From assembly GCA_002269645.1 (NCBI GenBank), contig NIVC01000127.1, forward strand, positions 310,001 through 374,000: a DNA stretch of 64,000 nucleotides. The letters run 5' to 3'. The translations under genes were made by a program, and so were the position numbers. Source of the stretch: Macrostomum lignano (Eukaryota). The notes under the pieces are model-generated. The model was not told the DNA's origin. It saw only the letters and a program-made list of their open reading frames with translations, and did not search any database. Shown piece by piece: positions 3,901-62,048 of the stretch; the stretch's first letter is position 1, and the number at the start of each line of letters is the position of its first letter.

Positions 3901-3915
3901 CGAGTCTCCCACGCC

Positions 3916-3945
3916 CCGGAAGTCAGCCGCACCAAATATGGCCCG
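3916..3945 (+). promoter_or_regulatory. ETS (CCGGAAGT) and YY1-like (AATATGGC) motifs upstream of the RPS21-like gene
   Basis: Both motifs are typical of animal ribosomal-protein promoters; motif match only. Confidence 0.35.
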
Positions 3946-4255
3946 GGATTTCCTCTCACCTTTGCAGCCGCAATCGTTCAAGCAGCCCATAGCAACAATG
4001 GAGCACTCATTTATCCCACGCAAATGCGACGCGACCCAGCGCATCATCGGGCCGAAGGACCACGCCTCCATCCAGCTGGCCTTCGCCGAGTTGAACGCTG
4101 ACGGCCGCATGACCGGCGGCAAGAAGGTGTTCAACATCAGCGGCGACGTGCGGCGACGCGGCGAGAGCGACATGTCTCTGAATGTGCTGACTAGCGAGCG
4201 AGGCATCACCGCCCCGTTCCTGCTCAAGCTGGACGAGACCAACCGCACGGCCTGA
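3938..4255 (+). CDS. RPS21: 40S ribosomal protein S21 (eS21)-like, divergent; true start uncertain (ATG 3938 or ATG 3998)
   Basis: FIPRKCDATQRIIGPKDHASIQ...GRMTG...GDVRRRGESD matches the eS21 motifs PRKC..NRII.AKDHASIQ and R.MGESD. AATAAA at 4350-4355. Confidence 0.88.
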   Translation: MARDFLSPLQPQSFKQPIATMEHSFIPRKCDATQRIIGPKDHASIQLAFAELNADGRMTGGKKVFNISGDVRRRGESDMSLNVLTSERGITAPFLLKLDETNRTA

Positions 4256-4499: not shown

Positions 4500-4812
4500 T
4501 CCCCAAATTTTCAAAATCTCAAGCTGCTGGATTTTTTAATCCCTAAATTTCCCAAATCCCATTCTTTTAAATCCATAAATTTTCCAAATTATCCATCCTT
4601 TTAAACCCTTAAAATTCCTCACACCCCATCCTTTTAAGTCGCTAAAATTCCCAAATTTCCCAAATTCCTATTCTTTTAAATCCCAAATTTCCCAAATCTC
4701 TATCCTTTTAAATCCCAAATTTCCCAAATCTCTATCCTTTTAAATCCCAAATTTCCCAAATCTCTATCCTTTTAAATCCCGAATTTCCCAAATCTCTATC
4801 CCCTTCAATTCC
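4500..4812. repeat. Degenerate about 32-bp tandem (cccaaatttcccaaatctctatccttttaaat)
   Basis: Tandem units visible between RPS21 and NACA. Confidence 0.85.
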
Positions 4813-5103
4813 AAAGGGCCTGTCAACTTAAGCTCATAAAGTGGAGCCCGAGTAACCTATGTACACAAATAATATGTCATTCGGCTCATAGTGACACCAG
4901 GAAGCTGATTTTTGGCAAAAGAGCAACAAAAATCAGACCGGGGATATGGGAGAACAAGCAAGAGGATAAGAAGGCAGACTTTTCGGCCCACTTTTCTTTT
5001 CCTATCGCATAACAATCCAGCGAAATTCGATAGTTGCTTACTGAAATCTGAGGTCAGTAGGATTGCTTGAACATGACAAGCTAAAATTACGCTCAGCAAA
5101 TAA

Positions 5104-6847
<1,744 letters not shown>

Positions 6848-15221: not shown

Positions 15222-18200
15222 AACTGAATGACTTGCCCACTCACTGAATGACTTGCCCACTCACTGAATGACTTGCCCACTCACTGAATGACTTGCCCAC
15301 TCACTGAATGACTTGCCCACTCACTGAATGACTTGCCCACTCACTGAATGACTTGCCCACTCACTGAATGACTTGCCCACTCACTGAATGACTTGCCCAC
15401 TCACTGAATGACTTGCCCACTCACTGAATGACTTGCCCACTCACTGAATGACTTGCCCACTCACTGAATGACTTGCCCACTCACTGAATGACTTGCCCAC
15501 TCACTGAATGACTTGCCCACTCACTGAATGACTTGCCCACTCACTGAATGACTTGCCCACTCACTAAATGACTTGCCCACTCACTGAATGACTTGCCCAC
15601 TCACTGAATGACTTGCCCACTCACTGAATGACTTGCCCACTCACTGAATGACTTGCCCACTCACTGAATGACTTGCCCACTCACTGAATGACTTGCCCAC
15701 TCACTGAATGACTTGCCCACTCACTGAATGACTTGACCACTCACTAAATGACTTGCCCACGCACTAAATGACTTGCCCACTCACTGAATGACTTGCCCAC
15801 TCACTGAATGACTTGCCCACTCACTGAATGACTTGCCCACTCACTGAATGACTTGCCCACTCACTGAATGACTTTCCCACTCACTGAATGACTTGCCCAC
15901 TCACTGAATGACTTGCCCACTCACTGAATGACTTGCCCACTCACTGAATGACTTGCCCACTCACTGAATGACTTGCCCACTCACTGAATGACTTGCCCAC
16001 TCACTGAATGACTTGCCCACTCACTGAATGACTTGCCCACTCACTGAATGACTTGCCCACTCACTGAATGACTTGCCCACTCACTGAATGACTTGCCCAC
16101 TCACTGAATGACTTGCCCACTCACTGAATGACTTGCCCACTCACTGAATGACTTGCCCACTCACTGAATGACTTGCCCACTCACTGAATGACTTGCCCAC
16201 TCACTGAATGACTTGCCCACTCACTGAATGACTTGCCCACTCACTGAATGACTTGCCCACTCACTGAATGACTTGCCCACTCACTGAATGACTTGCCCAC
16301 TCACTGAATGACTTGCCCACTCACTGAATGACTTGCCCACTCACTGAATGACTTGCCCACTCACTAAATGACTTGCCCACTCACTGAATGACTTGCCCAC
16401 TCACTGAATAACCTGTCCACTCACTGAATGACTTTCCCACTCACTGAATGACTTGCCCACTCACTGAATGACTTTCCCACTCACTGAATGACTTGCCCAC
16501 TCACTGAATGACCTGTCCACTCACTGAATGACCTGTCCACTGACCTGTCCACCATTGAATGACCTGTCCACTCACTGAATGACCTGTCCACTGACCTGTC
16601 CACCACTGAATGACCTGTCCACTCACTGAATGACCTGTCCACTCACTGAATGACCTGTCCACTGACCTGTCCACCACTGAATGACCTGTCCACTCACTGA
16701 ATGACCTGTCCACTCACTGAATGACTTGCCCACTCACTGAATGACTTTCCCACTCACTGAATGACCTGTCCACTCACTGAATGACTTGCCCACTCACTGA
16801 ATGACTTGCCCACTCACTGAATGACTTGCCCACTCACTGAATGACCTGTTCACTCACTGAATGACCTGTCCACTCACTGAATGACCTGTCCACTGACCTG
16901 TCCACCACTGAATGACCTGTCCACTCACTGAATGACCTGTCCACTCACTGAATGACTTGCCCACTCACTGAATGACTTGCCCACTCACTGAATGACTTGC
17001 CCACTCACTGAATGACTTGCCCACTCACTGAATGACTTGCCCACTCACTGAATGACTTGCCCACTCACTGAATGACTTGCCCACTCACTGAATGACTTGC
17101 CCACTCACTGAATGACTTGCCCACTCACTGAATGACTTGCCCACTCACTGAATGACTTGCCCACTCACTGAATGACTTGCCCACTCACTGAATGACTTGC
17201 CCACTCACTGAATGACTTGCCCACTCACTGAATGACTTGCCCACTCACTGAATGACTTGCCCACTCACTGAATGACTTGCCCACTCACTAAATGACTTGC
17301 CCACTCACTGAATGACTTGCCCACTCACTGAATAACCTGTCCACTCACTGAATGACTTTCCCACTCACTGAATGACTTGCCCACTCACTGAATGACTTTC
17401 CCACTCACTGAATGACTTGCCCACTCACTGAATGACCTGTCCACTCACTGAATGACCTGTTCACTCACTGAATGACCTGTCCACTCACTGAATGACCTGT
17501 CCACTGACCTGTCCACCACTGAATGACCTGTCCACTCACTGAATGACCTGTCCACTCACTGAATGACCTGTCCACTGACCTGTCCACCACTGAATGACCT
17601 GTCCACTCACTGAATGACCTGTCCACTCACTGAATGACTTGCCCACTCACTGAATGACTTGCCCACTCACTGAATGACTTGCCCACTCACTGAATGACTT
17701 GCCCACTCACTGAATGACTTGCCCACTCACTGAATGACTTGCCCACTCACTGAATGACTTGCCCACTCACTGAATGACTTGCCCACTCACTGAATGACTT
17801 GCCCACTCACTGAATGACTTGCCCACTCACTGAATGACTTGCCCACTCACTGAATGACTTGCCCACTCACTGAATGACTTGCCCACTCACTGAATGACTT
17901 GCCCACTCACTGAATGACTTGCCCACTCACTGAATGACTTGCCCACTCACTGAATGACTTGCCCACTCACTGAATGACTTGCTCACTCACTGAATGACTT
18001 GCCCACTCACTGAATGACTTGCCCACTCACTGAATGACTTGCCCACTCACTGAATGACTTGCCCACTCACTGAATGACTTGCCCACTCACTGAATGACTT
18101 GCCCACTCACTGAATGACTTGCCCACTCACTGAATGACTTGCCCACTCACTGAATGACTTGCCCACTCACTGAATGACTTGCCCACTCACTGAATGACTT

Positions 18201-19240
18201 GCCCACTCACTGAATGACTTGCCCACTCACTGAATGACTTGCCCACTCACTGAATGACTTGCCCACTCACTGAATGACCTGTCCACTCACTGAATGACTT
18301 GCCCACTCACTGAATGACTTGCCCACTCACTGAATGACTTGCCCACTCACTGAATGACTTGCCCACTCACTGAATGACTTGCCCACTCACTGAATGACTT
18401 GCCCACTCACTGAATGACTTGCCCACTCACTAAATGACTTGCCCACTCACTGAATGACTTGCCCACTCACTGAATAACCTGTCCACTCACTGAATGACTT
18501 GCCCACTCACTGAATGACTTGCCCACTCACTGAATGACTTTCCCACTCACTGAATGACTTGCCCACTCACTGAATGACTTGCCCACTCACTGAATGACCT
18601 GTCCACTCACTGAATGACCTGTCCACTGACCTGTCCACCATTGAATGACCTGTCCACTCACTGAATGACCTGTCTACTGACCTGTCCACCACTGAATGAC
18701 CTGTCCACTCACTGAATGACCTGTCCACTCACTGAATGACCTGTCCACTGACCTGTCCACCACTGAATGACCTGTCCACTCACTGAATGACCTGTCCACT
18801 CACTGAATGACTTGCCCACTCACTGAATGACTTTCCCACTCACTGAATGACCTGTCCACTCACTGAATGACTTGCCCACTCACTGAATGACTTGCCCACT
18901 CACTGAATGACCTGTCCACTCACTGAATGACCTGTTCACTCACTGAATGACCTGTCCACTCACTGAATGACCTGTCCACTGACCTGTCCACCACTGAATG
19001 ACCTGTCCACTCACTGAATGACCTGTCCACTCACTGAATGACCTGTCCACTCACTGAATGACCTGTCCACTCACTGAATGACCTGTCCACTCACTGAATG
19101 ACCTGTCCACTCACTGAATGACCTGTCCACTCACTGAATGACCTGTCCACTCACTGAATGACCTGTCCACTCACTGAATGACCTGTCCACTCACTGAATG
19201 ACCTGTCCACTCACTGAATGACCTGTCCACTCACTGAATG
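15222..19240. repeat. About 4-kb 20-bp minisatellite actgaatgacttgcccactc with higher-order variant blocks
   Basis: Roughly 200 units. The same family occurs at 39513-40785. Confidence 0.97.
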
Positions 19241-19244
19241 AATA

Positions 19245-20756: not shown

Positions 20757-21118
20757 CACCAACAGAAAGCGGAGGAAAAAATCCGGAGAATTCAGACCAA
20801 TCAGAAAGCGGAGGAAAAATCCGGAAAATTCAGACCAATCAGAAAGCGGAGAAAAAATCCGGAGAACTCAGGCCAATCAGAAAGCGGATGAAAAATCCGG
20901 AGAATTCAGACCAATCAGAAAGCGGAGGAAAAAATCCGGAGAATTCAGACCAATCAGAAAGCGGAGGAAAAATCCGGAGAACTCAGGCCAATCAGAAAGC
21001 GGAGGAAAAAATCCGGAGAATTCAGACCAATCAGAAAGCGGAGAAAAAATCCGGAGAACTCAGGCCAATCAGAAAGCGGATGAAAAATCCGGAAAATTCA
21101 GACCAATCAGAAAGCGGC
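20757..21118. repeat. About 39-bp minisatellite gaccaatcagaaagcggaggaaaaatccggagaattca overlapping the TRPM stop codon
   Basis: About 9 units; the last unit overlaps GCT TTC TGA of the TRPM CDS. Confidence 0.93.
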
Positions 21119-24100: not shown

Positions 24101-27100
24101 CTGTGCCTTGTCCGTGTCTTGTCTGTGCCATGTCTGTGTCTTGTCTGTGCCATGTCTGTGCCATGTCTGTGCCATGTCTGTGTCTTGTCTGTGTCTTGTC
24201 CTTGTCTTGTCTGTGCCTTGTTTGTGTCTTGTCTGTGTCTTGTCTGAGCCTTTTCTCTTGCAAACTTCTTGTCTTTTTGATGCTTCCTGTTTTAGTCCCC
24301 TGTCCCCCTGTGTCCCCTGTCTCCTGTCCCTGACCCCTGTCCCTGTCCCCTGTCCCTGACCCCTGTCCCTGTCCCCTGTCCCTGTCCCTGTCCCATGTCC
24401 CCAGCCGCACCGGATCGGTCAGGGCATCAGCTGGCGATCGGAAGGGTTTGGCCCGCAGCATCTGGTGCTCCATCAGCGGCAGAGCCACCCAGGTGAGCTC
24501 GGTGGTTAGCAACGAAGAGAATCGACTGCTGGCCCTGGCGCTGGCGACGTCGATCTCGGACAAGTGCAGCGAGTTGCTGCAGTGGCGAGGAGGGGGTCGG
24601 GGGTTCGAGTTTTGTAGGGAAGAGAAATGAGGAAAGATGGCGAATTAGAGCCACACCTTCTGCTTCCGGTTGCTTGGGCGGCCTCGGGCTCTCGCGCCGC
24701 TTGCCGGGCACCCGCGGCGCCGCCTGGGCCTGAGCGGGCGACGGCGCGCGCCTGGAGCCGCCTGTTGAGGCGGCCGCGGCGGCCGGTTTTGGGTGTACGT
24801 CGATGTTGAACTTGGAGCCTGCGCGGGAGCTGCAATAGAAATCGGTGGCAGATTGATAAGATAGCAGACACCCCAGGGGAAATACCGGACACCTTAGAGA
24901 TCACGGACACCCCTGGTGAAATACCGGACAGCCTAGATATCGGACCCCCAGGTAAAATACCGGACACCTTAGAGATACCGGAAACCCAAGGTGAGATACC
25001 GGACACCCAAGGTGAAATACCGGACACCCCAGGTGAAATACCGGACACCCTAGAGATCGCGGACACCTAGATAAAATACCGGACAACCCAGGTGAAATAC
25101 CGAACAAACCAGGTGAAATACCGGACACCTACGTAAAATACCGGACACCCTAGAGATAGCGGACACCCCAGGTGAAATACTGGACACCCTAGGTGAAATA
25201 CCGGACACCCTAAAGATATCGGACATCCTAGGTGAAATAGCGGACACCCTGAAGATATCGGACATCCTAGGTGAAATACCGGACACTCTAGAGATAGCGG
25301 ACACCCCAAGTGAAATACCGGACACCCTAGGTGAAATACCGGACACCCTAGGTGAAATACCGGACACTCTAGAGACATCGGACACCGAGGTGAAATACCG
25401 GACACCCCAGGTGAAATACCGGACACCCTAGAGATAGCGGACACCCAACAAAAGCAACAGCAAGCCAAGCAAAAGCTGACCCCATATGCTGCACCAGCTG
25501 GTTCAGGCAGTTTAGACAGGCGGTCTGCTGCAGCTCCATCCTCTGGCCCAGCCTCCGCACTTCCTCTTGCAGTCCGTCGACCCGCTCAGACAATCCGACG
25601 CATCTCTCGTCAACATCGTCAATTCGACGCAGCTGCTTCTCGGTGTCGCGGAGACCCTCGCGGATTCGAACCCGGACCACCGAGTGCATGGTGTCCCAGT
25701 CCATGGACTGGGCGGCGGCTGCCGCGGCTGCCGCGGCCGCAGCGACCGCCGATGCGGTGTTTTCGGTAGTGCCGGCAGCCGACTGCGACGGCAGCTGCAG
25801 CTGGCGGCGACCTGCCAGGTCGGATGCATTCGCTCGCCGGCGCTGCTGATTGGCCTCCTGGCGACGGCGAAGGAACTCCTGCGAGCGAAGGCCCTCCCAC
25901 TTGGTCAGCTGCTCCTCGCTCACGGCGGAGTCACCCACGATGCAGCCTTGTAGGGGGGAGTGAACAGGTGTTTGTGAGCAGGCTGGAGTGATGTGTGTTT
26001 GTGAGCAGGCTGGAGTGAACAGGTGTTTGTGAGCAGGCTGGAGTGAACAGGTGTTTGTGAGCAGGCTGGAGTGAACAGGTGTTTGTGAGCAGGCTGGAGT
26101 GAACAGGTGTTTGTGAGCAGGCTGGAGTGAACAGGTGTTTGTGAGCAGGCTGGAGTGAACAGGTGTTTGTGAGCAGGCTGGAGTGAACAGGTGTTTGTGA
26201 GCAGGCTGGAGTGAACAGGTGTTTGTGAGCAGGCTGGAGTGAACAGGTGTTTGTGAGCAGGCTGGAGTGAACAGGTGTTTGTGAGCAGGCTGGAGTGAAC
26301 AGGTGTTTGTGAGCAGGCTGGAGTGAACAGGTGTTTGTGAGCAGGCTGGAGTGAACAGGTGTTTGTGAGCAGGCTGGAGTGAACAGGTGTTTGTGAGCAG
26401 GCTGGAGTGAACAGGTGTTTGTGGGCAGGCTGGAGTGATGTGTGTTTGTGAGCAGGCTGGAGTGAACAGGTGTTTGTGAGCAGGCTGGAGTGAACAGGTG
26501 TTTGTGAGCAGGCTGGAGTGAACAGGTGTTTGTGAGCAGGCTGGGGTGATCTGTGTTTGTGAGCAGGCTGGAGTGAACAGGTGTTTGTGAGCAGGCTGGA
26601 GTGAACAGGTGTTTGTGAGCAGGCTGGGTGATCTGTGTCTGTGAGCAGGCTGAAGTGATCTGTGTTTGTGAGCAGGCTGGGGTGATCTGTGTTTGTGAGC
26701 AGGCTGGGGTGATCTGTGTTTGTGAGCAGGCTGGGGTGATCTGTGTCTGTGAGTAGGCTGGGGTGATCTGTGTCTGTGAGCAGGCTGGAGTGATCTGTGT
26801 CTGTGAGCAGGCTGGGGTGATCTGTGTCTGTGAGCAGGCTGGGGTGATCTGTGTCTGTGAGCAGGCTGGGGTGATCTGTGTCTGTGAGCAGGCTGGGGTG
26901 ATCTGTGTCTGTGAGTAGGCTGGGGTGATCTGTGTCTGTGAGCAGGCTGGAGTGATCTGTGTCTGTGAGTAGGGGTTATGGGGGGAGTCATTTGGTGTCT
27001 GTGAGCAGGGGCTGTAGGAGCAAGAGCAGCATGAACACACAATGAGACATTTCTGACTAGTGAACTCACGCAAAAATCCTCGAAAATCTGAAATTTTGGT

Positions 27101-39100: not shown

Positions 39101-40891
39101 TTGCACACTGCACACTCTGCACACACTGCACACACTGAGCACACTGCACACACTGCACACACTGAGCACACTGCACACACTGCACACACTGAGCACACTG
39201 CACACACTGAGCACACTGCACACACTGAGCACACTGCACACACTGAGCACACTGCACACACTGAGCACACTGCACACAAGAAGTAAATCGCAGCGCACTT
39301 TGGCAGAAAAGTAGTCGGACATCTTCAAGCTACCGAAAGCGTTGGTGACAACGGGCATCAGGTGGGTCTCGGCCGACCAGCTGCCGACTTCCAAGGAAAC
39401 GAGCGAGGAGTGCTCAAAGTACAGGTGCTCGTCCTGTGGCAGTCCGCAGTGGCACAGGCCCTCGGCTCTGGGGTGACGAAGTGACAGGGAATGATCTGCC
39501 ACCTGGGCTGCACTGAATGACCTGTCCACTCACTGAATGACCTGTCAACTCACTGAATGACCTGTCCAATCACTGAATGACCTGTCCACTCACTGAATGA
39601 CCTGTCCACTCCCTGAATGACTTGCCCACTCACTGAATGACCTGTCCACTCACTGAATGACCTGTCCACTCACTGAATGACCTGTCCACTCACTGAATGA
39701 CCTGTCCACTCACTGAATGACCTGTCCACTCACTGAATGACCTGTCCACTCACTGAATGACCTGTCCACTCACTGAATGACCTGTCCAATCACTGAATGA
39801 CCTGTCCACTCACTGAATGACTTGCCCACTCCCTGAATGACTTGCCCACTCACTGAATGACCTGTCCACTCACTGAATGACCTGTCCACTCACTGAATGA
39901 CCTGTCCATTCACTGAATGACCTGTCCACTCACTGAATGACCTGTCCAATCACTGAATGACCTGTCCACTCACTGAATGACCTGTCCACTCCCTGAATGA
40001 CCTGTCCACTCACTGAATGACCTGTCCAATCACTGAATGACCTGTCCACTCACTGAATGACCTGTCCACTCCCTGAATGACTTGCCCACTCACTGAATGA
40101 CCTGTCCACTCACTGAATGACCTGTCCACTGACCTGTCCACCACTGAATGACTTTATCACTCACTGAATGACTTGCCCACTCACTGAATGACTTGCCCAC
40201 TCACTGAATGACTTGCCCACTCACTGAATGACTTGCCCACTCACTGAATGACTTTATCACTCCCTGAATGACTTGCCCACTCACTGAATGACTTGCCCAC
40301 TCACTGAATGACTTGCCCACTCACTGAATGACTTGCCCACTCACTGAATGACTTGCCCACTCACTGAATGACCTGTCTACTCACTGAATGACCTGTCCAC
40401 TCACTGAATGACCTGTCCACTGACCTGTCCACCACTGAATGACCTGTCCACTCCATGAATGACTTGCCCACTCACTGAATGACTTGCCCACTCACTGAAT
40501 GACTTGCCCACTCACTGAATGACTTGCCCACTCACTGAATGACTTGTCCACTCACTGAATGACTTTATCACTCCCTGAATGACTTGCCCACTCACTGAAT
40601 GACTTGCCCACTCACTGAATGACTTGCCCACTCACTGAATGACTTGTCCACTCACTGAATGACTTTCCCACTCACTGAATGACTTGCCCACTCACTGAAT
40701 GACTTGCCCACTCACTGAATGACTTGCCCACTCACTGAATGACTTGCCCACTCACTGAATGACTTGCTCACTCACTGAATGACCTAATCCTTGATGTACT
40801 ACTGTTAATAAAAGATCCTGCATTACCTTTCAACAAACGTGCAGCACTCCCTCACATCCAGGCACCTGTGCTCGAAGAAGGCGCTGCTCAT
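21107..40891 (-). CDS. TRPM2: TRPM2-like cation channel module (MHR1-4, 6TM, TRP box, coiled coil, NUDT9-H). Exons 40891-40827, 39512-39299, 36974-36803, 36338-36172, 36043-35817, 35401-34930, 33217-33065, 32750-32082, 30970-30803, 30138-29695, 28847-28652, 27982-27853, 27373-27177, (27087-27070), 25946-25481, 24818-24657, 24576-24411, 23828-23460, 22653-22474, 21346-21107; about 1624 aa alone
   Basis: TRPM motifs RECCTFV, CHCG..H, FVRIS, LDPNHNFFLMVDD, DFYATPMVRF, WNLMDF, NLGPKVVMI, FGEL, NVLLLNLLIAMF, WTLQRY..PPP. NUDT9-H motifs WGPNH..ITRWKRD and NAWLE...NVHE. Splice phases are consistent except around 24.6-24.8 kb, where the acceptor choice is ambiguous. Symbol given by domain architecture; orthology untested. 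Confidence 0.92.
21457..22395. repeat. 20/22-bp minisatellite ccgtgtccataccctctcca (TRPM intron)
   Basis: Tandem units visible. Confidence 0.95.
22725..23450. repeat. 21-bp minisatellite aatcccacaccctcaatcgaa (TRPM intron)
   Basis: Tandem units visible. Confidence 0.95.
23855..24400. repeat. 10-bp cttgtctgtg/catgtctgtg repeat plus ccctgt repeat (TRPM intron)
   Basis: Tandem units visible. Confidence 0.92.
24865..25445. repeat. About 20-bp ggtgaaataccggacaccct repeat (TRPM intron)
   Basis: Tandem units visible. Confidence 0.92.
25955..27005. repeat. 28/27-bp minisatellite ggagtgaacaggtgtttgtgagcaggct grading into ggggtgatctgtgtctgtgagcaggct (TRPM intron)
   Basis: Tandem units visible, with a polar variant gradient. 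Confidence 0.95.
27425..27760. repeat. 57-bp tandem repeat, about 6 copies (TRPM intron)
   Basis: gtgcgcggtgagggtgagggtttcactgtacactctttctatccctctgtctggtta repeated without spacers. Confidence 0.93.
28060..28480. repeat. 21-bp minisatellite cagggcatgagaccatactgt (TRPM intron)
   Basis: Tandem units visible. Confidence 0.94.
28922..29690. repeat. 23-bp minisatellite atgactcactaatgatctagatt, interrupted by the SINE
   Basis: Tandem units on both sides of 29116-29477. Confidence 0.92.
29116..29477 (-). mobile_element. Full-length tRNA-derived SINE (about 360 bp) with A-tail
   Basis: Minus strand begins GGGGGCCGTAGCCCAGCGGTAG (A box) and GGCTCGATTCC (B box) and ends CTCTAATAAAAAAAA. It is flanked by a duplicated TAATGATCTAGAT, an apparent target-site duplication. 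Confidence 0.85.
30175..30732. repeat. 30-bp minisatellite gctgattggctcttctctccccaactcaat (TRPM intron)
   Basis: Tandem units visible. Confidence 0.95.
31055..32020. repeat. 20-bp minisatellite tctcccgatgtctacccgat (TRPM intron)
   Basis: Tandem units visible. Confidence 0.95.
32753..33020. repeat. G/T-rich (gggtgggtt)n low-complexity intron
   Basis: Dense GGG runs. Confidence 0.9.
33255..34920. repeat. 23-bp minisatellite ccgcccctagttagtgtctttat (TRPM intron)
   Basis: Tandem units visible. Confidence 0.95.
35445..35720. repeat. Degenerate about 57-bp tandem (aaatagaaacacggagtt...tcaagtggg) in a TRPM intron
   Basis: 4-5 diverged copies. Confidence 0.7.
36385..36775. repeat. 42-bp minisatellite cagggagactgtgtccgcttggtccttcaatcatgtaagcta (TRPM intron)
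   Basis: About 9 units. Confidence 0.94.
37042..39278. repeat. cacactg/cacacactg 7-9-bp satellite (TRPM intron)
   Basis: 2.2-kb array; source of the His/Thr and Cys/Val artefact ORFs. Confidence 0.96.
39513..40785. repeat. 20-bp minisatellite actgaatgacctgtccactc (same family as 15.2-19.2 kb)
   Basis: Tandem units visible; shares diagnostic variants with the 15-19 kb array. Confidence 0.96.
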
Positions 40892-40993
40892 CTGTGAGAA
40901 AAAAATGGACAAATGCCAAGAGGCTGGCTTGATGCACATGCCTGGAGCCTACTTGGCTCGTATAGCGCATGTAGCTGTGAACAGCGAACTTAC

Positions 40994-43900
40994 GGTTTGG
41001 TACAGTCTGATTAATTTTTGAACCTCGCTGCGCTTGTTTGCCAGGTCTACCGGTGTCTTGCCGTCCTGAATAGATTGGAAACCGAGTGCTTATCTGTATG
41101 GCATTACGGGTACTGTACTGTGCACACACTCGGAGCACACTGTACTGTACACACACTCGGAGCACACTGTACTGTACACACACTCGGAGCACACTGTACT
41201 GTACACACACTCGGAGCACACTGTACTGTACACACACTCGGAGCACACTGTACTGTACACACACTCGGAGCACACTGTACTGTACACACACTCGGAGCAC
41301 ACTGTACTGTACACACACTCGGAGCACACTGTACTGTACACACACTCGGAGCACACTGTACTGTACACACACTCGGAGCACACTGTACTGTACACACACT
41401 CGGAGCACACTGTACTGTACACACACTCGGAGCACACTGTACTGTACACACACTCGGAGCACACTGTACTGTACACACACTCAGAGCACACTGTACTGTA
41501 CACACACTCGGAGCACACTGTACTGTACACACACTCGGAGCACACTGTACTGTACACACACTCGGAGCACACTGTACTGTACACACACTCGGAGCACACT
41601 GTACTGTACACACACTCGGAGCACACTGTACTGTACACACAATCGGAGCACACTGTACTGTACACACACTCGGAGCACACTGTACTGTACACACACTCGG
41701 AGCACACTGTACTGTACACACACTCGGAGCACACTGTACTGTACACACACTCGGAGCACACTGTACTGTACACACACTCGGAGCACACTGTACTGTACAC
41801 ACACTCGGAGCACACTGTACTGTACACACACTCGGAGCACACTGTACTGTACACACACTCGGAGCACACTGTACTGTACACACACTCGGAGCACACTGTA
41901 CTGTACACACACTCGGAGCACACTGTACTGTACACACACTCGGAGCACACTGTACTGTACACACACTCGGAGCACACTGTACTGTACACACACTCGGAGC
42001 ACACTGTACTGTACACACACTCAGAGCACACTGTACTGTACACACACTCGGAGCACACTGTACTGTACACACACTCGGAGCACACTGTACTGTACACACA
42101 CTCGAAGCACACTGTACTGTACACACACTCGGAGCACACTGTACTGTACACACACTCAGAGCACACTGTACTGTACACACACTCGGAGCACACTGTACTG
42201 TACACACACTCGGAGCACACTGTACTGTACACACACTCGGAGCACACTGTACTGTACACACACTCGGAGCACACTGTACTGTACACACACTCGGAGCACA
42301 CTGTACTGTACACACACTCGGAGCACACTGTACTGTACACACACTCAGAGCACACTGTACTGTACACACACTCGGAGCACACTGTACTGTACACACACTC
42401 GGAGCACACTGTACTGTACACACACTCGGAGCACACTGTACTGTACACACACTCGGAGCACACTGTACTGTACACACACTCGGAGCACACTGTACTGTAC
42501 ACACACTCGGAGCACACTGTACTGTACACACAATCGGAGCACACTGTACTGTACACACACTCGGAGCACACTGTACTGTACACACACTCGGAGCACACTG
42601 TACTGTACACACACTCGGAGCACACTGTACTGTACACACAATCGGAGCACACTGTACTGTACACACACTCGGAGCACACTGTACTGTACACACACTCGGA
42701 GCACACTGTACTGTACACACACTCGGAGCACACTGTACTGTACACACACTCGGAGCACACTGTACTGTACACACACTCGGAGCACACTGTACTGTACACA
42801 CACACAACTACTACTAAGCTACTAATTTATCACGAATTTGTACTTTAACAGTTGCACTCACCCTGTTTCTGACCGTCCAGTCGAGCCGATCAATCAGGCA
42901 CAGCTGGGCTACACAGGCCGGGCCGGCCGCTGCGGCCAGGTGGCACGGCGTGTTGCCATGGCGATCGGCCACCTCGGACTGGCGCGGGATCCGCCTGGCC
43001 AGCTGGCGCACCAGGAACGGGTTGCCAACCAGACAGGCCAGGTGCAGCGGCGTCTCCCCGTCCTGAGGAGTCATTTAGAGTGAACTAGTAAAACACTTTA
43101 CTGTCTATATGGACAGAGCACCATAGACAACAAAAACCGTTCTTGCTGAATCCCCTTGAAGAGGGGCTGGCGCCTCCTCTGAAGCTGGCGCTCCTCTGTT
43201 GCTGGCGCCCTTTTCTGTAGCTGGCGCCCCCTCTGTAGCTGGCGCCCCTTTCTGTTAGCTGGCGCCCTTTTCTGTAGCTGGCGCCAACCTCTGTATCTGG
43301 CGCCCCTCTGAAGCTGGCGCTCCTCTGTTGCTGGCGCCCTTTTCTGTAGCTGGCGCCCCTTTCTGTTAGCTGGCGCCCTTTTCTGTAGCTGGCGCCAACC
43401 TCTGTATCTGGCGCCCCTCTGAAGCTGGCGCTCCCTCTGTAGCTGGCGCCCCCCCCTGGAGTAGCTGGCGCCCCCCCTGGAGTGGCTGGTGCCCCCCCCC
43501 CTTGTAGCTGGTGCCGCATTATAGCTGGTATAGCTGGTGCCCCCCCTGTAACTGGTGGCCCCCTGTAGCTGGTGCCCCCCTGTAACTGGTGGCCCCCTGT
43601 AGCTGGTGCCCCCCCCTTGTAGCTGGTGCCCCATTATAGCTGGTGCCCCCCCCTGTAACTGGTGGCTCCCTGTAGCTGGTGCCCCCCCCTTGTAGCTGGT
43701 GCCCCATTATAGCTGGTGCCCCCCCCTGTAACTGGTGGCCCCCTGTAGCTGGTGGCCCCTGTAGCTGGTGCCCCCCCCTGTAGCTGGTGCCCCCCTGTAA
43801 CTGGTGGCCCCCTGTAGCTGGTGGCCCCCTGTAGCTGGTGCCCCCCCTGTAGCTGGTGCCCCCCCTGTAGCTGGTGCCCCCCTGTAGCTGGTGCCCCCCC

Positions 43901-45227
43901 TGTAACTGGTGGCCCCCTGTAGCTGGTGGCTCCCTGTAGCTGGTGCCCCCCCTGTAGCTGGTGCCCCCCCTGTAGCTGGTGCCCCCCCTGTAGCTGGTGC
44001 CCCCCCCCTGTAACTGGTGGCCCCCTGTAGCTGGTGGCTCCCTGTAGCTGGTGCCCCCTGTAGCTGGTGCCCCCCTGTAGCTGGTGCCCCCCTGTAGCTG
44101 GTGCCCCCCTGTAGCTGGTGCCCCCCTGTAGCTGGTGCCCCCCTGTAGCTGGTGCCCCCCTGTAGCTGGTGCCCCCCTGTATCTGGTGCCCCCCTGTAGC
44201 TGGTGCCCCCCCCTGTAGCTGGTGCCCCTTTTTGAAATTGCAACTCACAGCGGTGAGCGGCGCGGGCTCCCCGGGTCGGCAGTAATCAAGCAGGAGGCTC
44301 ATCGTAGTCGGGCTGTCGATAGCAGCGGCCAGGTGCAGCAGGGTGCAGCAGTTGACGGCTGAGCGATTTGGAAGCTGGAACGGACCAAATAGCTGAGTTC
44401 GTAGATAGCTGGGATGTCTGCAGTGTTGCAGTGTCTTTGAGTGAGGCACAGTGTCTTTGAGTGAGGCACAGTGTCTGTGAGGGGGGCGCAGTCTCTATGG
44501 GAATGAGATGCAGTGTCTGTGAGGTGGGCGCAGTGTCTATGGGAATGAGATGCAGTGTCTGTGAGGGGGGCGCAGTGTCTATGGGAATGAGGTGCAGTGT
44601 CTATGGGAATGAGGTGCAGTGTCTATGGGAATGAGGTGCAGTGTCTATGGGAATGAGGTGCAGTGTCTATGGGAATGAGGTGCAGTGTCTGTGAGGAGGC
44701 GCAGTCTCTATGGGAATGAGGTGAAGTGTCTATGGGAATGAGGTGCAGTGTCTATGGGAATGAGGTGCAGTGTCTATGAGAATGAGGTGCAGTGTCTGTG
44801 AGGAGGCGCAGTGTCTATGGGAATGAGGTGCAGTGTCTGTGAGGAGGCGCAGTGTCTATGGGAATGAGGTGCAGTGTCTGTGAGGAGGCGCAGTGTCTAT
44901 GGGAATGAGGTGCAGTGTCTGAGGAGGTTCAGTGTCTATGGGAGTAAAGCTAAAGTCTTTCCACCGTTGACAAAGCGGAGCCTGGAGCGAGGCGCTCACC
45001 TGAATCCGGTCGGACTTGTACATGAAGGACATCTCCAGCATGCCGGCAGCCACTGCGGTCTGCAGTCTGCCTGGGGTCAGCTCATCGGCTTCAATCTCGC
45101 TAACTACGGCCTGCAGATCCCCGGCGGGCAGATTATTCCCATACTCCTCCAGATCCCGCAGCTTCAGACTGGAGTCGCTGCAGTTGAGCTCGGACATGAC
45201 TAAACTCACCGTGTGCTCGTCGGACAT
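40994..45227 (-). CDS. Ankyrin-repeat module (about 4 repeats); exons 45227-45000, 44374-44249, 43062-42862, 41065-40994. Probably the N-terminus of the TRPM gene; otherwise a stand-alone protein stopping at 40949
   Basis: CTLLHLAAA, DGETPLHLAC, HGNTPCHLAA, DGKTPVDLA. All introns are GT-AG phase 0. The 5' end of the first exon is less certain. Confidence 0.82.
41112..42805. repeat. Highly homogeneous 27-bp minisatellite actgtactgtacacacactcggagcac (ankyrin intron)
   Basis: About 62 near-identical units; open in several frames. Confidence 0.97.
43170..44228. repeat. tagctggcgccc / tagctggtgccccccctg minisatellite (ankyrin intron)
   Basis: Tandem units with variable C-runs. Confidence 0.93.
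44420..44945. repeat. 22-bp minisatellite gtgtctatgggaatgaggtgca (ankyrin intron)
   Basis: Tandem units visible. Confidence 0.93.
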
Positions 45228-54924: not shown

Positions 54925-56450
54925 CTGAAATAAAAATTGCTGGAGTTTATTTTTGTTGTCGTGTAATGCTTCTGCCAAATGCAATCTGGCAATCCTCATT
55001 CTGTATGTGACAGGCCTAGGGGGATTTGTGTCACAGGGCGTGTCGTGACACATCACCTTCAATTTTGGCTACCTGGATTTGGACCCCGGATGCCAAATTA
55101 GCACCAGATGGTGATTAGTAGTTTTTGGAATTTCCTGGAAAAATAGTTATTTTCATCACATAGCCAATGATTGCGTTTGATTGGGGAAAGTAAAGATAAT
55201 AATTCTTTTAATTTAGCTTGCACTACATGTTACTCTGCAGTGCATTTCTGCTAGGTAATCTTCACTGCGCAAGATCAAATGCAATCATTGATTTTGTGAT
55301 GAAAAAAAGATTTTTTCCTTTTACCGCCGTGAATTTTTTGCAGCAAATCGGCCTCCAAAAAAACTACACGATCTTTGAGTTTTACGTCCTGTTATACTAC
55401 TTGTAAGACTTGTATGTGGGCTCAGCAGTGTAACTGGTAGGGTAGGGATGTTAGTACTTTATTTGATTTCCAATTTTTGACTGATGCCTAGGACCGCAAA
55501 AAGTAGATTAACTACAGATAGATATGTCACTCCTAGAAAATGCGCTTATCTACTTATTTAGTAGTAATGTTAGTGTTTTTTAATAGAAAAACTATGAGAT
55601 TATAAATTTTAGTACCTGTGGTTTTACGCTTAAAAATCCTATTGTCAGACAGATAAATAAACAAAAGAATTAAAAGTTTTGATTTTCCAGTTTAACTGAA
55701 ACCAAATAAACACGCGAATATGGTTTAGCATTAAAATATAAAAAAACGATCAAAGAGTGTTATCCAACGGTAGAAAAAACCTTCGGAACACCAACATAGC
55801 TTAGCATAGATAATGTGTATTAAAATCCGGTAATGAAGTCATGACGGTGAGTAGATAAGCAGCAAAATCTATTGAAATAAAGCCAACGCATCAATGATCC
55901 CAATATACATAAACACTTGGCATTACGAAGGCACAGAAACTTCTTTGTGTTTGACGTCGCAAACAAAATAAATAACGGAATGCAGTCCGATAAATAAAAT
56001 AGAAAATGAGCAGCTTCATAACGCATAATAAGTTATAACGAGGCACAAAATTAGCAAGGATAGGACAAAGTACAGCTGTGTGCTTAGAACTTGTGACCAG
56101 TTGAAACTTTTCTTGCTTAACAGTTTCAACTGGATTTGAACTTGCTAAACTCTAGGTCAGTTTTAAATAAATTTCTCTTAAGAAATAAAGATAACAGTCT
56201 GATGGACCGGGTGAAAACGGTGCCTTGGACCAAGAAGCGTCCCAAGAAGTGTCATTTGCTTCGCCCCAGAGTTGTTTCAGGTAACACAGGTAAAGTAGGA
56301 AAGGAAGTGTAAAAAGCGAAAGAAAAGAATATTGATTTTTTATTAGTGGATAGCTGAACCTCCTGTCCAGGTCTGTTTGAGTAGTCCATGACAGGCGTCT
56401 TGTATGCATCAGCATGGTTCAGAAAAGTACTTTCATCTGGATTCCAGGTC

Positions 56451-56903
56451 TCATTCAATTTCCAGCAGAAGATCGGCCTTCCCGTTGTTCTGCTCCACTT
56501 TGCTGCACTCGCCGAAGCCGGCAGACTCGCCGTCGCACTGGACAGACACAGAGCGCGTGCTGTGCTCCTCATAGCCGAATAGGCAGCTATCGATCAGGCT
56601 TGAGCAGCAGTACAATGCCACTACTAGGAGCAGCAATAGCAGCAACAGCAGCAACAGCATCGCTAGATTTGACAGGCCATGCGACCAGCCGAATCGCATC
56701 AGGTAGTGCAGCGGCACGAATCGCCATTCAACAATATACAATTCGTCTCGTTGAATAGCTACGTTGCTGTGGAGGCCGGCGGATCTGGCTTCCAGAATTA
56801 ACTGGCGCAACTGGTGGTCCCGCGTAGCGGTGAAGTTGCGCAGTATAGCCTGCAGAACGCTGCGCGAATCCAGCAGATTTGCGGGGGTATATGCTAGTAA
56901 CAT
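56451..56903 (-). CDS. Uncharacterised 150-aa single-pass membrane protein (may be the last exon of a larger gene)
   Basis: GC-rich open frame within AT-rich flanks. Poly-Leu TM segment AMLLLLLLLLLLLVVALYCC. Acceptor tttacag lies 1 nt before the ATG. No family recognised. Confidence 0.45.
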   Translation of the reverse strand: MLLAYTPANLLDSRSVLQAILRNFTATRDHQLRQLILEARSAGLHSNVAIQRDELYIVEWRFVPLHYLMRFGWSHGLSNLAMLLLLLLLLLLLVVALYCCSSLIDSCLFGYEEHSTRSVSVQCDGESAGFGECSKVEQNNGKADLLLEIE

Positions 56904-59900
56904 ACTGTAAACATTAATTTATATTCAGATTTTTATAGATTTCTATAAAACTGAACTTGATGGTTTAGCATACATTTGAATTTTCTTCGAAACAAGTTCA
57001 CACAAGTTTTAAAACTATATAAACTGCACTATTGTGTCATAAATTGACGGGTTAACTTAATGATAGTGTTGTTCCGCTGGTATTTCTACTATAAGTATGG
57101 TATAACGTAAATACTAACTATATTAATATTATTCTCGTTTTTTACACATACTATCACTTTCAGTAGAGTGGTTAATAAATTATCTGTATAATGTATTATT
57201 GATCATGTGACATCTCTGGCTCTAAAATATTATTTGTGTAGTTTTTCTAGTGGATGCTTTATAATATAAATAAAGCAACTGAGCGCATCTTGCACTTTAA
57301 CTTTACAATTACAACTGGAAAGCTCCTATATTTGGCTATACAACACTTACATCAATAGCTTGACAGAATATAACTTGAAACACTTGAGATGCATCTTTTT
57401 CTCAAACGGATAACTGTGAAACTTATATAATGGACTGAATAGTTTACTAGCAAAATTTTCAACAGATAAATAAATATTAGACTCTAAATTGGAATTCTCA
57501 TACTTCTTTGAAAAGATCATATCATAATCATATGTGCACAGACTTCAGAATTTTAGAGTGAATGAAAGAGCTTTTCTTTCTTTTTCTTTTCATTTTTTAT
57601 GTTTTTTCTTGCTTCATTTTATTTTTCATTCTTTTGCATGCATACTAGGTCAGCTAGGTGTTGCAAATGTATGAAAATGATTATAATTTTAGACCATAGC
57701 TTTTAGATAGAATATATTTCAATAAGCTAGGGTAAAGAATATCAATTAGGGCTTACTTGTCCCATTCAAAAAATATTAGCTAGGCCTTTGTTCAAATAAA
57801 TGCCAAGTAGTTATGTTCTACAATACCCTGATTATAGCTCTGGCTATATAGAATACTAATACTAAGAGAAAGCAAATACTCTTATAGATATACCCAAGGG
57901 AATATTATAGTTAAAAGCTTTTATTATAAATTTTATTGGTTTGCAAAAATTGGAAAGCAAAATAAAAGAGAATTATATCATTAATCAAGCAAAAGGTAAA
58001 AATAAGTATTTTAGTAATAAAAATAGAAAATTTTTATTTTACCGAATTTGTCTTGCTATAATATTAATAATGACTATAGCTATAGTATGTAGTAAGCAAC
58101 CACAAAAATCTAGATACTTATAGATATTGGTTTTTTTCATTTTATTTTATAAAAAGTAAATTCCATTTTAAGCAAAGCTGTTGATCTTGGCAGTTTAGGT
58201 GGCGTTCTTAGATAAGTAAGTGATAAAAAAATTGGCTTTATTCTGCAACACATATTAAACAAAGATTCTAAGGAACTGCTTGCTGAATAGTTGCTATGTA
58301 ATCATCTAGAATTGCAATTATAGGCTTCAACATCTGATGCAATATAGGCCATGATGATTTGCCAATAATGACATTCTGTATTAAAATCACAAAAATCATA
58401 GTGGATCACTAAAAGGAAAAAAATCAATACAATTGATTAGATTAACTAATCTTAACTAATTTTGTATATGAATACAGGCACTTAGACACAAGGGTATAGA
58501 ATTAAGCTATTTTGCTACTTCAAATGTTTTATAAATTGATTATATATAATTTATTGCTATTGCTATTCCTTCTCCAGTGTTAGGTGTTAGAATCTCTAGT
58601 GTCTATCTTTTAAACAACCATGCCGCTCAAATGACCACTCCACTACAATTATAACTACCCTCCCCCAGAATTTGAGGACCCCAGCAGTCAGAGTAAAACA
58701 AGAGAAAGAATTTTGTTGTGATTTGTCTGTGTGACTCTCTGGATTTATTTGTGTGAATGCAACACTGACGGGAATTCAAATGTAGAATCTGTCCTTCTTC
58801 ATTAGTGACAGCAATTGACTTTAATCATCCAAAAAAACTTTCTCCACCCCCACACCCCATCTCCAGCCACCTCATGCATGCGCAACTGCTGGCCGACCTG
58901 GCCGATCTGGCCACAGTAAATTGTGGTGAACCAGGGGTAAGTCGCAAAAATGCCCAACCTAAAGAATACAGACGGAGTACTAATTAGATGACAAGGCATT
59001 TAGCTCTAATAAGACAGTTATAGTTTCTCCTGCCGTTTACCCAAAATTGTGTTAAGGTTTCTTTTACAGGTAAGTTGCATTTTTGGTTGAAAAGTAAGTT
59101 GCATGGCCAGTGTAAATCAGGGGGGTTGCGCATGTATGAGCCACCTCAAAAGTATACAAATTATAGCTACATACATATATAGCACTAAGCAATTTTTACC
59201 TAGAGTGAACTAAATTAAATAGCAATTTCTTGGAAAAATTTATTGATAAAAGAAAAACTGACATTTTTTCACCCACAATCTTTGATTTTGTTTAGTTTCA
59301 TTTTAGGATTTCTATTAAAAATGAATAGAAAGGCAATATAGTTTATCAAAAGATTGCTATATAATAATTATATTTTATTTCATAATTAGGCCTATCTCAT
59401 CTCAATAGTAAAATTATATTTATATACTCATATAGAATATAGGGAGATCATAGAAAGTAAAAAAATAAAAAGTAGTTTTTCAACTAAACTAATAACTGCT
59501 AGTCAGTTAATCAAATCAAGTCAAAACCAACTATAAGTATAAAGGCTATATTTTTAAAGATAAAAAACAAATATGATACAATGGTATATTAAATTTAAAT
59601 TTGTTTTCTATGTTTTTGTGCAGATACATACCTTTTCTTACTTTTATCTTATAACCTTATCTCATTATAAAATTTACTAAGAGATCATAAGATTAAAGTG
59701 AAGGGCACACACACATGGAAGTGCTTATCCCCACTGGCCACAGTCCCATGTCAATAATTTGAATTTTATCCATACAGTTCTATGTCAATAATTTTCAGCT
59801 TATCCCTACAGCTAAGGTTATGCAGTTGCTTGTATTTATTTTTGTGTATTGATGTTAAATTGATAGTCATTATTATTAGTATTATTACTTATTATTATTA

Positions 59901-61916
59901 CATTTTAAATTTTGAATTTTTTAAATCTCATTTGCCTCAATTTTAGGGTCTATTTGGTTGTTCTAAGCAAAGCCGGCAGCTAAGCGAATATTTAAAATTA
60001 ACCTTTTTAATGACAAAAAAGTTTTAACAAAGTACTTGATACTTTTCATTATTCAATAGTTTACTTGGAAGATTTGTAAAACAGTGAAAACAAATAGATG
60101 GTTTTGAACAGATTCATTTTTAAGGTTCTCTATTCCAATAAGCTATAATAGAGATAAGCTAGAAATTATTGACATGAATCAATATCAATAAAATTGGAAT
60201 TATTAGCATGGGATGGTAAGGATAAGCACTTCCCATACACATATCTATATAAAAATTTATTGAAAAATAAACATGAGCATAAGCTTATATAGGCCTAGGC
60301 CCTATTCACTTTTATATTTTGATATTGCTTTTAACTTACACTATAGAATGACTAAGGCCAAGGGGCCTAGGCCTAGGCCTAGACCCTAACAAAAATTTGT
60401 TAATTTATAAACTATATTTAATTTAATTTACTTTTATGCTATGATCCCCATAATGTTTTATATAAGTGATTGTAAAATGAAATAGATTAAGGCTCATATC
60501 ATATCTCTATCAGTGGAATCAGTCTATCACTTGACTTGTCTTTTTAGGCTCTAATCATTTTAATACAATCTCCCTATTTAAATATTTGTATAATGGAAGT
60601 GAATTTATATAGGCTTTATTTATAAAGATATAAGTCAAAACTAATATATGCCTTTATCAATGAACTAACTTGATTTTAAAGAATGTTAGTCACTCTTATT
60701 GGGGATTGTATAACAAAAACTCCAACTCTCATTCACATTTAGACAATAGTAGGGGATTTTAGGATGAAAGAATGCCAAAATATCATGAATTTTTATTCCA
60801 TAGATTAATTTAGTTAATTTATTATTGGTGCAAAAAGTTGATTTTTTAGCTTGCAGGGGCAAAGAAACTTTTACTAAGTCTGTGTTTTGACTTTAGTGCA
60901 CAGGTGAGGCACTGCACTATAGGCCCATGGTACTAGGTAGAAAAGTTATAAACAATCTTTATTTATGCAAGTCGGAACAATCAATGACTTTCATTCAATT
61001 TTATATGTATGATGTACACGTATCTGATAGGGCCTATTCATCATTCGGTTTTAAAATCAATAATATTCTATTCAACTTATTTATTGCTCTAAACTTAATT
61101 TTATAGGTTTTCTTTCAGATTAGTCCCGGTCTATATACTAGGTCAAAGATAATTAATTACTGTTTTTAAGAGGAGGCTTTATTCGTCAATATTTAAAAAA
61201 TCCTATATACTAAAAACTTAAAAACCTTTTTCTAAAAATTTGGCTTATTCTGAGAAAGCTAGTGGACGCCAAAAAGTTAAATTAAAAAACAAATGCTAAA
61301 CATATGCCTACTTCAAACAAATGTGTCCAAACAAACAATTTTAAAACTGCAATTACTACAAAACGCAATGGATTTCTTGACCTTATATTCAATTTGCATT
61401 GCTTAGGCACCCAAATTAGTAGCATTAAACTACTCTTTACAATATGCATCACAGCATAGAGCATATACAGCGTACTTGTTCATGTGTAAAGATTCAACAA
61501 TCCGTTAACGATCAACAAGTCCTGTAACAATTAATGAGCGCATTAAGAATTCAAAAGTATTTTAATAATGTGGGATAATATGAGATTTCAGTAAAATAGC
61601 TGAGACACGGGGAACTTACATGAAAGTGCAGATCGAGCTTTAATTGGGATGAGATGGATGGCTATTTTTTGGTGAGAGTGGGATGAGATTGAGGTTGAAT
61701 GAGCTGGATGTAAGATGAGTTTAAACTAAGTTATATTAAATAAGCAATAAATATTTGCAAGAAGGTTATCGTGAGAACCCTGGTGCAACGCTTTTTTGGC
61801 GATGAACATGATGGCCCCCACGCAACGAAACCACCGTGGTGAGGCTTTTAGCTTCCTGCTGACTCTTGAGCCCATAAGGCGCGCGGATGGGCACGCACTC
61901 GTCAGCTCGTCGCCTC

Positions 61917-62048
<132 letters not shown>

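Follow-up and report, generated by a model that had tools for sequence, protein, structure and literature searches.

An apparent N-terminal ankyrin head on a TRPM2-like channel gene of Macrostomum lignano and its counterparts in flukes

The stretch of DNA analysed here (the window) comprises 64,000 nucleotides (nt) of the Macrostomum lignano genome (assembly GCA_002269645.1, contig NIVC01000127.1, positions 310,001 to 374,000 of the forward strand; coordinates below are those of the window), and its minus strand carries ankyrin exons followed by the exons of a TRPM2-like channel. These are modelled as a single 23-exon gene that runs from 45227 to 21107 (about 24 kb), keeps one open frame of 1841 amino acids through all 23 exons, has canonical splice sites throughout and ends, in a model extended by hand, with the C-terminus ...AAQHHGAAF and a stop codon at 21107. 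The ankyrin part consists of four exons (A1 to A4), all of lengths divisible by three, with an AG acceptor and a GTGAG or GTAAG donor. Exon A1 (45227-45000, 228 nt) supplies the start codon, which is the first ATG downstream of an in-frame stop in an open reading frame that opens at 45263, and a 76-amino-acid N-terminal region with no recognised domain, ending at a phase 0 donor (gtgagc). Exon A2 (44374-44249, 126 nt, phase 0-0, AG acceptor and GTGAGT donor) encodes ankyrin repeat 1 (CTLLHLAAA...; Pfam Ank_2, residues 80-140), exon A3 (43062-42862, 201 nt, phase 0-0) encodes repeats 2 and 3 (DGETPLHLAC..., DRHGNTPCHLAAA...; Pfam Ank, 1.9e-11, and Ank_5), and exon A4 (41065-40994, 72 nt, phase 0-0) encodes the C-terminal capping repeat (DGKTPVDLANKRSEVQKLIRLYQT), its protein ending ...LIRLYQT at the donor CAAACC/GTAAGT (a slash marks the splice site).

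Between A4 and the first TRPM exon lies an intron of exactly 102 nt (40993-40892, phase 0; GTAAGT, a polypyrimidine tract and CACAG), whose donor GTAAG fits the M. lignano cis-donor motif GT[G/A]AG (PMC8629364) and whose last letters (ttgtccatttttttctcacag) abut the exon start ATGAGCAGC. Reading through the A4 donor gives VSSLFTATCAIRAK and then a TAG (40951-40949) inside this intron. The original prediction for this locus had placed four phase 0 ankyrin exons, the A4 donor, the 102-nt intron, the CACAG/ATG junction and a read-through stop at 40949, all of which hold exactly. It had also proposed a joined product of about 1833 amino acids in the order ankyrin repeats, MHR, six transmembrane helices, NUDT9H; the open fused frame stands, as does the order, with which Pfam, alignments to solved TRPM2 channels and NUDT9 matches agree, and only the length is corrected, to the 1841 amino acids given above.

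The TRPM part occupies exons T1 to T19. Exon T1 (40891-40827, 65 nt, entered in phase 0 and left in phase 2) encodes a Cys-rich TRPM N-terminal motif (MSSAFFEHRCLDVRECCTFVE(R)), and T2 (39467-39299, matched by tblastn to human TRPM2) encodes a CHCGLPQDEH motif and an FG..K segment ahead of SLOG. The SLOG/MHR1 region begins in T3 (36974-36803; FVRISSF...VTVLGG...; Pfam LSDAT_euk), continues as SLOG/MHR1-2 through T4 (36338-36172) and T5 (36043-35817; LDPNHNFFLMVDD...) and ends in T6 (35401-34930), which also encodes MHR2/3 and agrees with two UniRef M. lignano models (P0001 and P0002). MHR3 follows in T7 (33217-33065), MHR3/4 in T8 (32750-32082; the Pfam TRPM2-like domain PF25508), and a linker with the pre-S1 region in T9 (30970-30803). 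Transmembrane helices S1-S4/S5 are encoded by T10 (30138-29695; tblastn to human TRPM2, Pfam Ion_trans), S5 and the pore helix (FESFGELQ) by T11 (28847-28652), the pore loop and S6 (FTNVLLLNLLIAMF) by T12 (27982-27853), and the TRP helix (YWTLQRYLIMREY, aligned with relatives) by T13 (27373-27177). Exon T14 (25946-25481) holds the post-TRP region with a poly-Ala tract and a coiled-coil that is putative, being read from sequence only; T15 (24829-24655) holds a Pro/Ala-rich linker and has an uncertain 3' boundary, and T16 (24554-24411), with an uncertain 5' boundary, holds the linker ahead of NUDT9H. The NUDT9H domain is spread over T17 (23828-23460; N-terminal part, LPLWGPNHGLVVLITRWKRDD), T18 (22707-22474; middle part, with a degenerate Nudix box) and T19 (21388-21107; C-terminal part, SNAWLELACVNVHE...AAQHHGAAF, and the stop codon).

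The encoded protein thus consists, from its N-terminus, of the 76-amino-acid head, four ankyrin repeats (three full repeats and a cap), the Cys-rich motif, SLOG/MHR1-2, MHR3-4, six transmembrane helices with a pore loop, the TRP helix, the probable coiled-coil and NUDT9H. Four Pfam ankyrin profiles exceed their cut-offs within residues 80-194 (Ank, 44 bits against 21.1; Ank_2, 43.6 against 27.3; Ank_3, 39.6 against 22.3; Ank_5, 39.5 against 27), and the SLOG/MHR1-2 region (LSDAT_euk, E = 8.5e-28, 97.9 bits against a cut-off of 25.7), the MHR3/4 region (PF25508, E = 1.1e-26) and the six-helix channel domain (Ion_trans, E = 1.2e-11, followed by the TRP helix) are likewise present. The best relative of solved structure is Nematostella TRPM2 (6co7, E = 9e-109), to which residues 939-1321 of the channel domain align, and zebrafish and human TRPM2 come next; the alignments of solved TRPM2 structures begin at residue 211, just past the Met that opens T1. 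The last 294 amino acids match human NUDT9 (1q33; phmmer, E = 5e-12) and the NUDT9H domains of Nematostella TRPM2 (nvTRPM2) and human TRPM2, and the C-terminus resembles the human TRPM2 end; Pfam NUDIX itself was not detected in this protein by the Pfam scan. These profile matches and alignments show a genuine ankyrin head of four repeats joined to a full SLOG-6TM-NUDT9H channel (6TM, six transmembrane helices).

The M. lignano genome encodes a paralog of the same make-up, BOX15_Mlig003066g1 (P0029, 1781 amino acids; GCA_002269645.1, NIVC01000307.1), in which Pfam finds Ank_2, LSDAT_euk, the TRPM2 domain and Ion_trans. Gene annotation in its assembly, Mlig_3_7, derives from a transcriptome assembly (PMC8629364). 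A single BLASTP segment crosses the junction, joining residues 86-475 of the window protein to residues 96-501 of the paralog. At the paralog locus (L001) one uninterrupted exon (11771-12023) encodes the ankyrin cap (SGRSALDCAREAGPKARACLRLL), a linker and the TRPM N-terminus as far as NNCFGEVEFPGLGNTAQ, which is the conserved TRPM 'FGE.EF' segment; the two halves share one DNA reading frame within one exon, so that no splicing decision is needed there. The paralog resembles the window protein in its ankyrin repeats, SLOG, TRPM2 domain, six transmembrane helices and NUDT9H-like tail (ending ...AEAHKAYY), in its colinearity through the junction and in three introns around it, and it is the sister of the window gene in the tree described below (97%). 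It differs in sequence (27% identity over the N-terminal 430 amino acids and 44% in the best core segment), in lacking the A1-A2, A4-T1 and T1-T2 introns and the RECCTFVE/CHCG Cys-rich motif, and in keeping the S2 Glu-Glu pair. UniRef also holds M. lignano models from an old assembly that are nearly identical to the window gene but frameshifted, with stretches 97-100% identical to its exons. One of them, A0A1I8FFN3, already joins the ankyrin and TRPM parts, and two near-identical small fragments (P0042 and P0058) are, by their sequence, genome-derived read-through models.

Fused relatives are also found in flukes. The hits from 1.8 billion representatives, queried with the UniRef model, were scanned locally for ankyrin repeats, looked up by name and run through Pfam; Ank_2 scored above the Pfam cut-off N-terminal to SLOG in proteins of Clonorchis sinensis (KAG5447154.1, 1708 amino acids), Opisthorchis viverrini (XP_009171463.1, 1731 amino acids) and Paragonimus westermani (KAF8568535.1, partial, 507 amino acids). 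Their ankyrin repeats align one for one with those of the window protein, the repeat of exon A2 corresponding to repeat 1 of both the paralog and the fluke proteins, and the A4 cap has its equivalent in HKKTPYNMATEH... of Paragonimus. As in the window protein, Ank_2 precedes LSDAT_euk, the TRPM2 domain and Ion_trans, and weak NUDT9_N matches are on record for Clonorchis and Opisthorchis. The fluke proteins have about 25 more amino acids in the linker that joins the ankyrin cap to the Cys-rich exon and differ in their Ca2+-site residues, EN in S2 and K..E in S3, and the fluke genes span more than 120 kb. The original prediction had called for a search of other proteomes for ankyrin repeats joined to TRPM, with or without NUDT9H, and the paralog and these three species supplied them.

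The gene structures also agree around the junction in the position and phase of their introns; for the flukes this was checked in Paragonimus. The Paragonimus locus (L002) has a phase 0 intron before the cap, a phase 0 intron before the Cys-rich exon, a phase 2 intron after it and a phase 0 intron before 'YVRIS/FVRIS'. The phase 0 introns A3-A4 and T2-T3 are common to the window, Paragonimus and the paralog; the phase 0 intron A2-A3 is common to the window and the paralog; and the phase 2 intron T1-T2, together with the phase 0 intron ahead of the small Cys-rich exon, is common to the window and Paragonimus. Both boundaries of T2 are conserved in Paragonimus. The small Paragonimus exon (74 nt, PKEGSLWIPFNLNAPICVKPSHSLQ) has the same phases as the 65-nt T1 and begins with Pro, and the A4-T1 intron is absent from the paralog, whose coding sequence is continuous at that point.

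Exon T1 has a second possible end. An alternative in-frame donor (CACAG/GTGCCT, 40866/40865) precedes the main T1 donor by 39 nt and is the one used in A0A1I8FFN3; its use would remove CLDVRECCTFVER, most of the Cys-rich motif that the paralog likewise lacks.

A neighbour-joining distance tree was built from 1100 columns with no more than 20% gaps, the ankyrin head of the window protein being excluded, so that it describes essentially the channel part only. All flatworm sequences in it form one clade (100% bootstrap), within which an ankyrin clade unites the window gene and Mlig003066 with the Clonorchis and Opisthorchis proteins (97% bootstrap). Its ankyrin-less sister clade (100% bootstrap) holds a 2242-amino-acid Schistosoma spindale protein, Clonorchis KAG5451156, an Echinostoma protein, Mlig001812 and A0A1I8HSQ2, and is presumed, by size and composition, to be the TRPM_PZQ-like group. 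Because of the tree and the shared intron positions and phases, the ankyrin head is best read as a character that was gained once, before macrostomids and flukes diverged. The ankyrin module would probably have been added upstream of a TRPM2-like gene by symmetric exon shuffling in phase 0, a route that the symmetric phases (0-0) of all the ankyrin exons fit.

We consider it highly probable that the locus is one 23-exon minus-strand gene for an ankyrin-headed TRPM2-like channel of an old flatworm clade, and that 40993-40892 is an ordinary cis-spliced intron. The fusion is taken as real because of the paralog protein, the single-exon junction of the paralog, the fluke proteins and the conserved introns, and the cis junction from 40994 to 40891 that the original prediction offered as one option is borne out as a genuine architecture by the first three of these. 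Phase compatibility alone would be expected by chance about once in three, and an exon-initial ATG in a few percent of cases; it is the colinear homology to fused relatives that argues against an accidental junction. Several points weigh the other way. The fluke proteins are computational gene models, and the protein searches returned no transcript-derived or NCBI protein identical to the window gene. The alternative in the original prediction would lead one to expect both an ATG at the exon start and a spacing of 102 nt, the modal length of M. lignano operon spacers (PMC8629364). The T15/T16 junction (24554-24655) is uncertain: the obvious acceptor (tgcag/C) requires a phase 2 donor that is absent, and the junction was modelled as GGT/gtggct with tccgag/ATC (phase 0); an assembly indel in C5 homopolymers nearby is possible. 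Finally, the copy might conceivably be poorly expressed or decaying, given that an S2 Glu is lost (discussed below) and no transcript is annotated.

Among the alternatives, the one that survives best, though we judge it improbable, is a double use of 40892/40891, in which most transcripts are cis-spliced and the spliced leader (SL) is added at the same AG to transcripts that start internally, or to precursors not yet spliced, to give an ankyrin-less channel starting from Met210 or from the leader's AUG. About 30% of M. lignano genes are trans-spliced to the SL, a 35-nt leader that ends in ATG (PMC8629364), and this ATG would be in frame with ATGAGC at a phase 0 acceptor. Moreover, the exon itself opens with ATG, residue 211 is where similarity to solved TRPM2 channels sets in, and M. 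lignano has ankyrin-less paralogs with normal gene models (Mlig001812). If this were true, a choice between cis- and trans-splicing at a conserved phase 0 intron would switch a regulatory ankyrin head on or off in one gene. However, TCACAG at the acceptor departs from the trans-splice motif [T/C]TNCAG (PMC8629364), and the consensus cis donor 102 nt upstream favours cis-splicing under a rule quoted in the same paper: for trans-splicing to win out, an upstream donor has to be absent. Conservation does not extend to the Met, since the paralog has Ala there and the equivalent Paragonimus exon opens with Pro, and the exon-initial ATG carries little weight because a leader spliced to a phase 0 acceptor, whichever it is, would contribute an in-frame AUG of its own. 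An SL sequence or gene is absent from the window, and an internal promoter would be hypothetical. The original prediction had seen in this Met the start of a complete TRPM N-terminus, which its lack of conservation does not support, and had envisaged three products from one site, for which nothing speaks beyond the 102-nt spacing and the exon-initial ATG.

Considerably less likely is a silent or decaying duplicate of an ankyrin-headed TRPM in a recently duplicated genome, whose splice pattern would have no functional meaning. The locus has no transcript-based NCBI protein, although its paralogs have one, the S2 Ca2+-site Glu has become Ala, and one exon junction is uncertain; against this, 23 exons keep an 1841-amino-acid open frame with canonical splice sites, and the pore, the TRP helix, the N..D of S3 and the flanks of NUDT9H are conserved. 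Since channel mRNAs are typically rare, the missing model is in any case weak evidence.

To a two-gene operon we give scarcely any credence. Here a 223-amino-acid ankyrin protein would end at the TAG at 40949 and an ordinary TRPM would start from 40891 after SL addition, with no fusion at all. The locus does resemble the SL operons of M. lignano and nematodes in having about 100 nt between the upstream coding exon and the acceptor (M. lignano operon spacers peak near 100 bp; PMC8629364), and read-through of the A4 donor does give a short open tail and a stop. It differs from them in its strong upstream cis donor, in its off-motif acceptor and in that its relatives make the two halves as a single protein. 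The read-through stop is followed by the acceptor after only 57 nt, and neither AATAAA or ATTAAA nor any of 10 common variants occurs in 41065-40600 (from A4 to 225 nt past T1), which, with the consensus donor, tells against the separate ankyrin mRNA that had been proposed. The ankyrin module is always fused to SLOG in relatives, and no stand-alone ortholog was found, the protein search giving only generic ankyrin matches; in the paralog both parts lie in one exon, and Paragonimus has an equivalent intron of the same phase. The suggestion that the locus captures an operon turning into a fusion gene is likewise at odds with the tree and the introns, by which the fusion predates the split between Macrostomum and the trematodes. 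Two further candidates are rejected: the ankyrin exons do not belong to the upstream 3beta-HSD-like gene, whose frame closes near 47302, and the window gene is not Ml.TRPM_PZQ, as follows from its tree position and from the TRP-helix Glu, which is residue 1495 in Ml.TRPM_PZQ (PMC9910428) but lies near 1245 in the window protein.

By homology, the ankyrin-headed protein would assemble as a tetramer into a TRPM2-type, non-selective cation channel, and its ankyrin head would most likely lie peripherally in the cytoplasm, beneath the SLOG layer, and act in docking or regulation. An AlphaFold2 model of the Paragonimus fragment with ankyrin repeats and SLOG, from a 6-row alignment, had a mean predicted local distance difference test (pLDDT) score of 56, too low to interpret. 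In the alignment with relatives the window protein shows no recognisable Nudix box, the catalytic signature of the ADP-ribose (ADPR) pyrophosphatase, but retains the NUDT9 segments on either side of it (the NUDT9 reference for this alignment is consistent with the phmmer NUDT9 match). Because of this the NUDT9H domain probably lacks catalytic activity. All the flatworm TRPM2-like proteins compared, namely the ankyrin clade and Mlig001812, the sole ankyrin-less member examined, have lost the Nudix box, which the mollusc Solemya retains; the NUDT9H domains of flatworm 'nudix' TRPMs may be non-catalytic in general.

The S2 motif encoded by exon T10 is VEAVKQ, in which Ala (codon 30012-30010) replaces the second Glu of 'EE..Q', a residue that we take to be a Ca2+ ligand of TRPM2, TRPM4, TRPM5 and TRPM8 (E843 of human TRPM2). 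The other Ca2+-site residues are kept (the S2 Gln, the S3 Asn and Asp, and the TRP-helix Glu), whereas the fluke members of the clade have Asn at the second S2 Glu position and K..E instead of N..D in S3, and the paralog Mlig003066 keeps Glu-Glu. From the Ala at this ligand position we infer that Ca2+ co-activation would be altered, and together with the loss of the Nudix box it suggests gating different from that of textbook TRPM2. The window protein has an intact SLOG domain, the domain that in zebrafish TRPM2 binds ADPR (cited in PMC13143021).

The surrounding DNA is eukaryotic, with GC-rich gene bodies, and the flanks (1-2000 and 56000-62000) are strongly AT-rich (GC 0.29-0.36) compared with the gene-dense middle (GC 0.50-0.63). 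Nearly every intron of the channel gene (21107-45227) holds its own minisatellite, with periods of 9-57 nt and lengths of up to 2.3 kb. A related 20-mer, ACTGAATGAC[C/T]TG[T/C]CCAC, fills the T1-T2 intron (39511-40785) and also makes up a 4-kb array downstream of the gene (15223-19241); the stop and last codons of the channel (GCCGCTTTCTGA) themselves fall within the first unit of a 38-bp minisatellite (20758-21117) that extends for about nine copies into the 3' flank. The minus-strand neighbours of the channel gene are, upstream, the C-terminal exon of Nop53 (51701-51228) and a gene of the 3beta-HSD/epimerase family (SDR42E1-like, 50055-47302) and, downstream, a gene for an immunoglobulin-domain protein (15060 to about 9500). 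The plus strand carries RPL31 (2334-2705), RPS21 (3851-4252) and NACA (NAC domain at 5104-5616, UBA at 6497-6844), arranged head to tail within 4.5 kb and parted only by minisatellites (2950-3876 and 4533-4815), a cluster that looks like an SL-resolved operon of translation-related genes.

Reviews and phylogenetic surveys present TRPM as the TRP family that has no ankyrin repeats (Himmel et al. 2020, PMC7306681), and a 2026 survey of TRPM domain gains and losses mentions neither flatworms nor an N-terminal ankyrin gain (PMC13143021). N-terminal ankyrin or ankyrin-like repeats have been remarked on by the Marchant group in TRPM_MCLZ (PMC10788528, PMC11731825, PMC12861061), and a 2024 review by the same group colours ankyrin domains in its schematics of schistosome TRPMs, its text discussing no channel that combines ankyrin repeats, SLOG and Nudix. 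As far as was found, the proteins compared here constitute an unnamed flatworm subfamily of ankyrin-headed TRPM2-like channels that is visible in public annotation, with Ank flagged, and that no paper describes; the novelty of the architecture, which was to fall if it were already known, is thus reduced to the extent that annotated flatworm proteins display it, and stands as regards a published account of ankyrin repeats with SLOG and NUDT9H. The importance of the finding is limited accordingly: the proteins are already public, the TRPM_MCLZ repeats are known, and any functional role is read from sequence. Its interest lies in a conserved ankyrin head that a free-living macrostomid shares with liver and lung flukes, in a defined channel subfamily, adjoining the presumed praziquantel-target clade, in parasites in which TRPM channels are proven drug targets, and in what would be a clean example of domain gain by shuffling of symmetric exons.

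Three known groups of TRPM channels invite comparison. TRPM2, represented by the solved structures of nvTRPM2 (6co7) and of the zebrafish (6drk) and human (6mix) channels, shares with the window protein the SLOG/MHR1-4 region, the six transmembrane helices, the TRP helix and the C-terminal NUDT9H domain, but has no N-terminal ankyrin repeats, and the window protein departs from it in having no recognisable Nudix box and an Ala at the S2 ligand position. TRPM_PZQ, the praziquantel target, and its M. lignano ortholog Ml.TRPM_PZQ are also flatworm TRPM2-like channels with NUDT9H, and the clade that appears to hold them is the sister of the ankyrin clade, but they are longer proteins without an ankyrin head. 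TRPM_MCLZ of Schistosoma mansoni (Smp_333650), the meclonazepam target, is a flatworm TRPM for which N-terminal ankyrin or ankyrin-like repeats have been reported, as in the window protein; it lacks SLOG/MHR1-2 and the C-terminal enzyme domain and is encoded as 1380 amino acids in three exons (PMC11731825), whereas the window protein has both domains.

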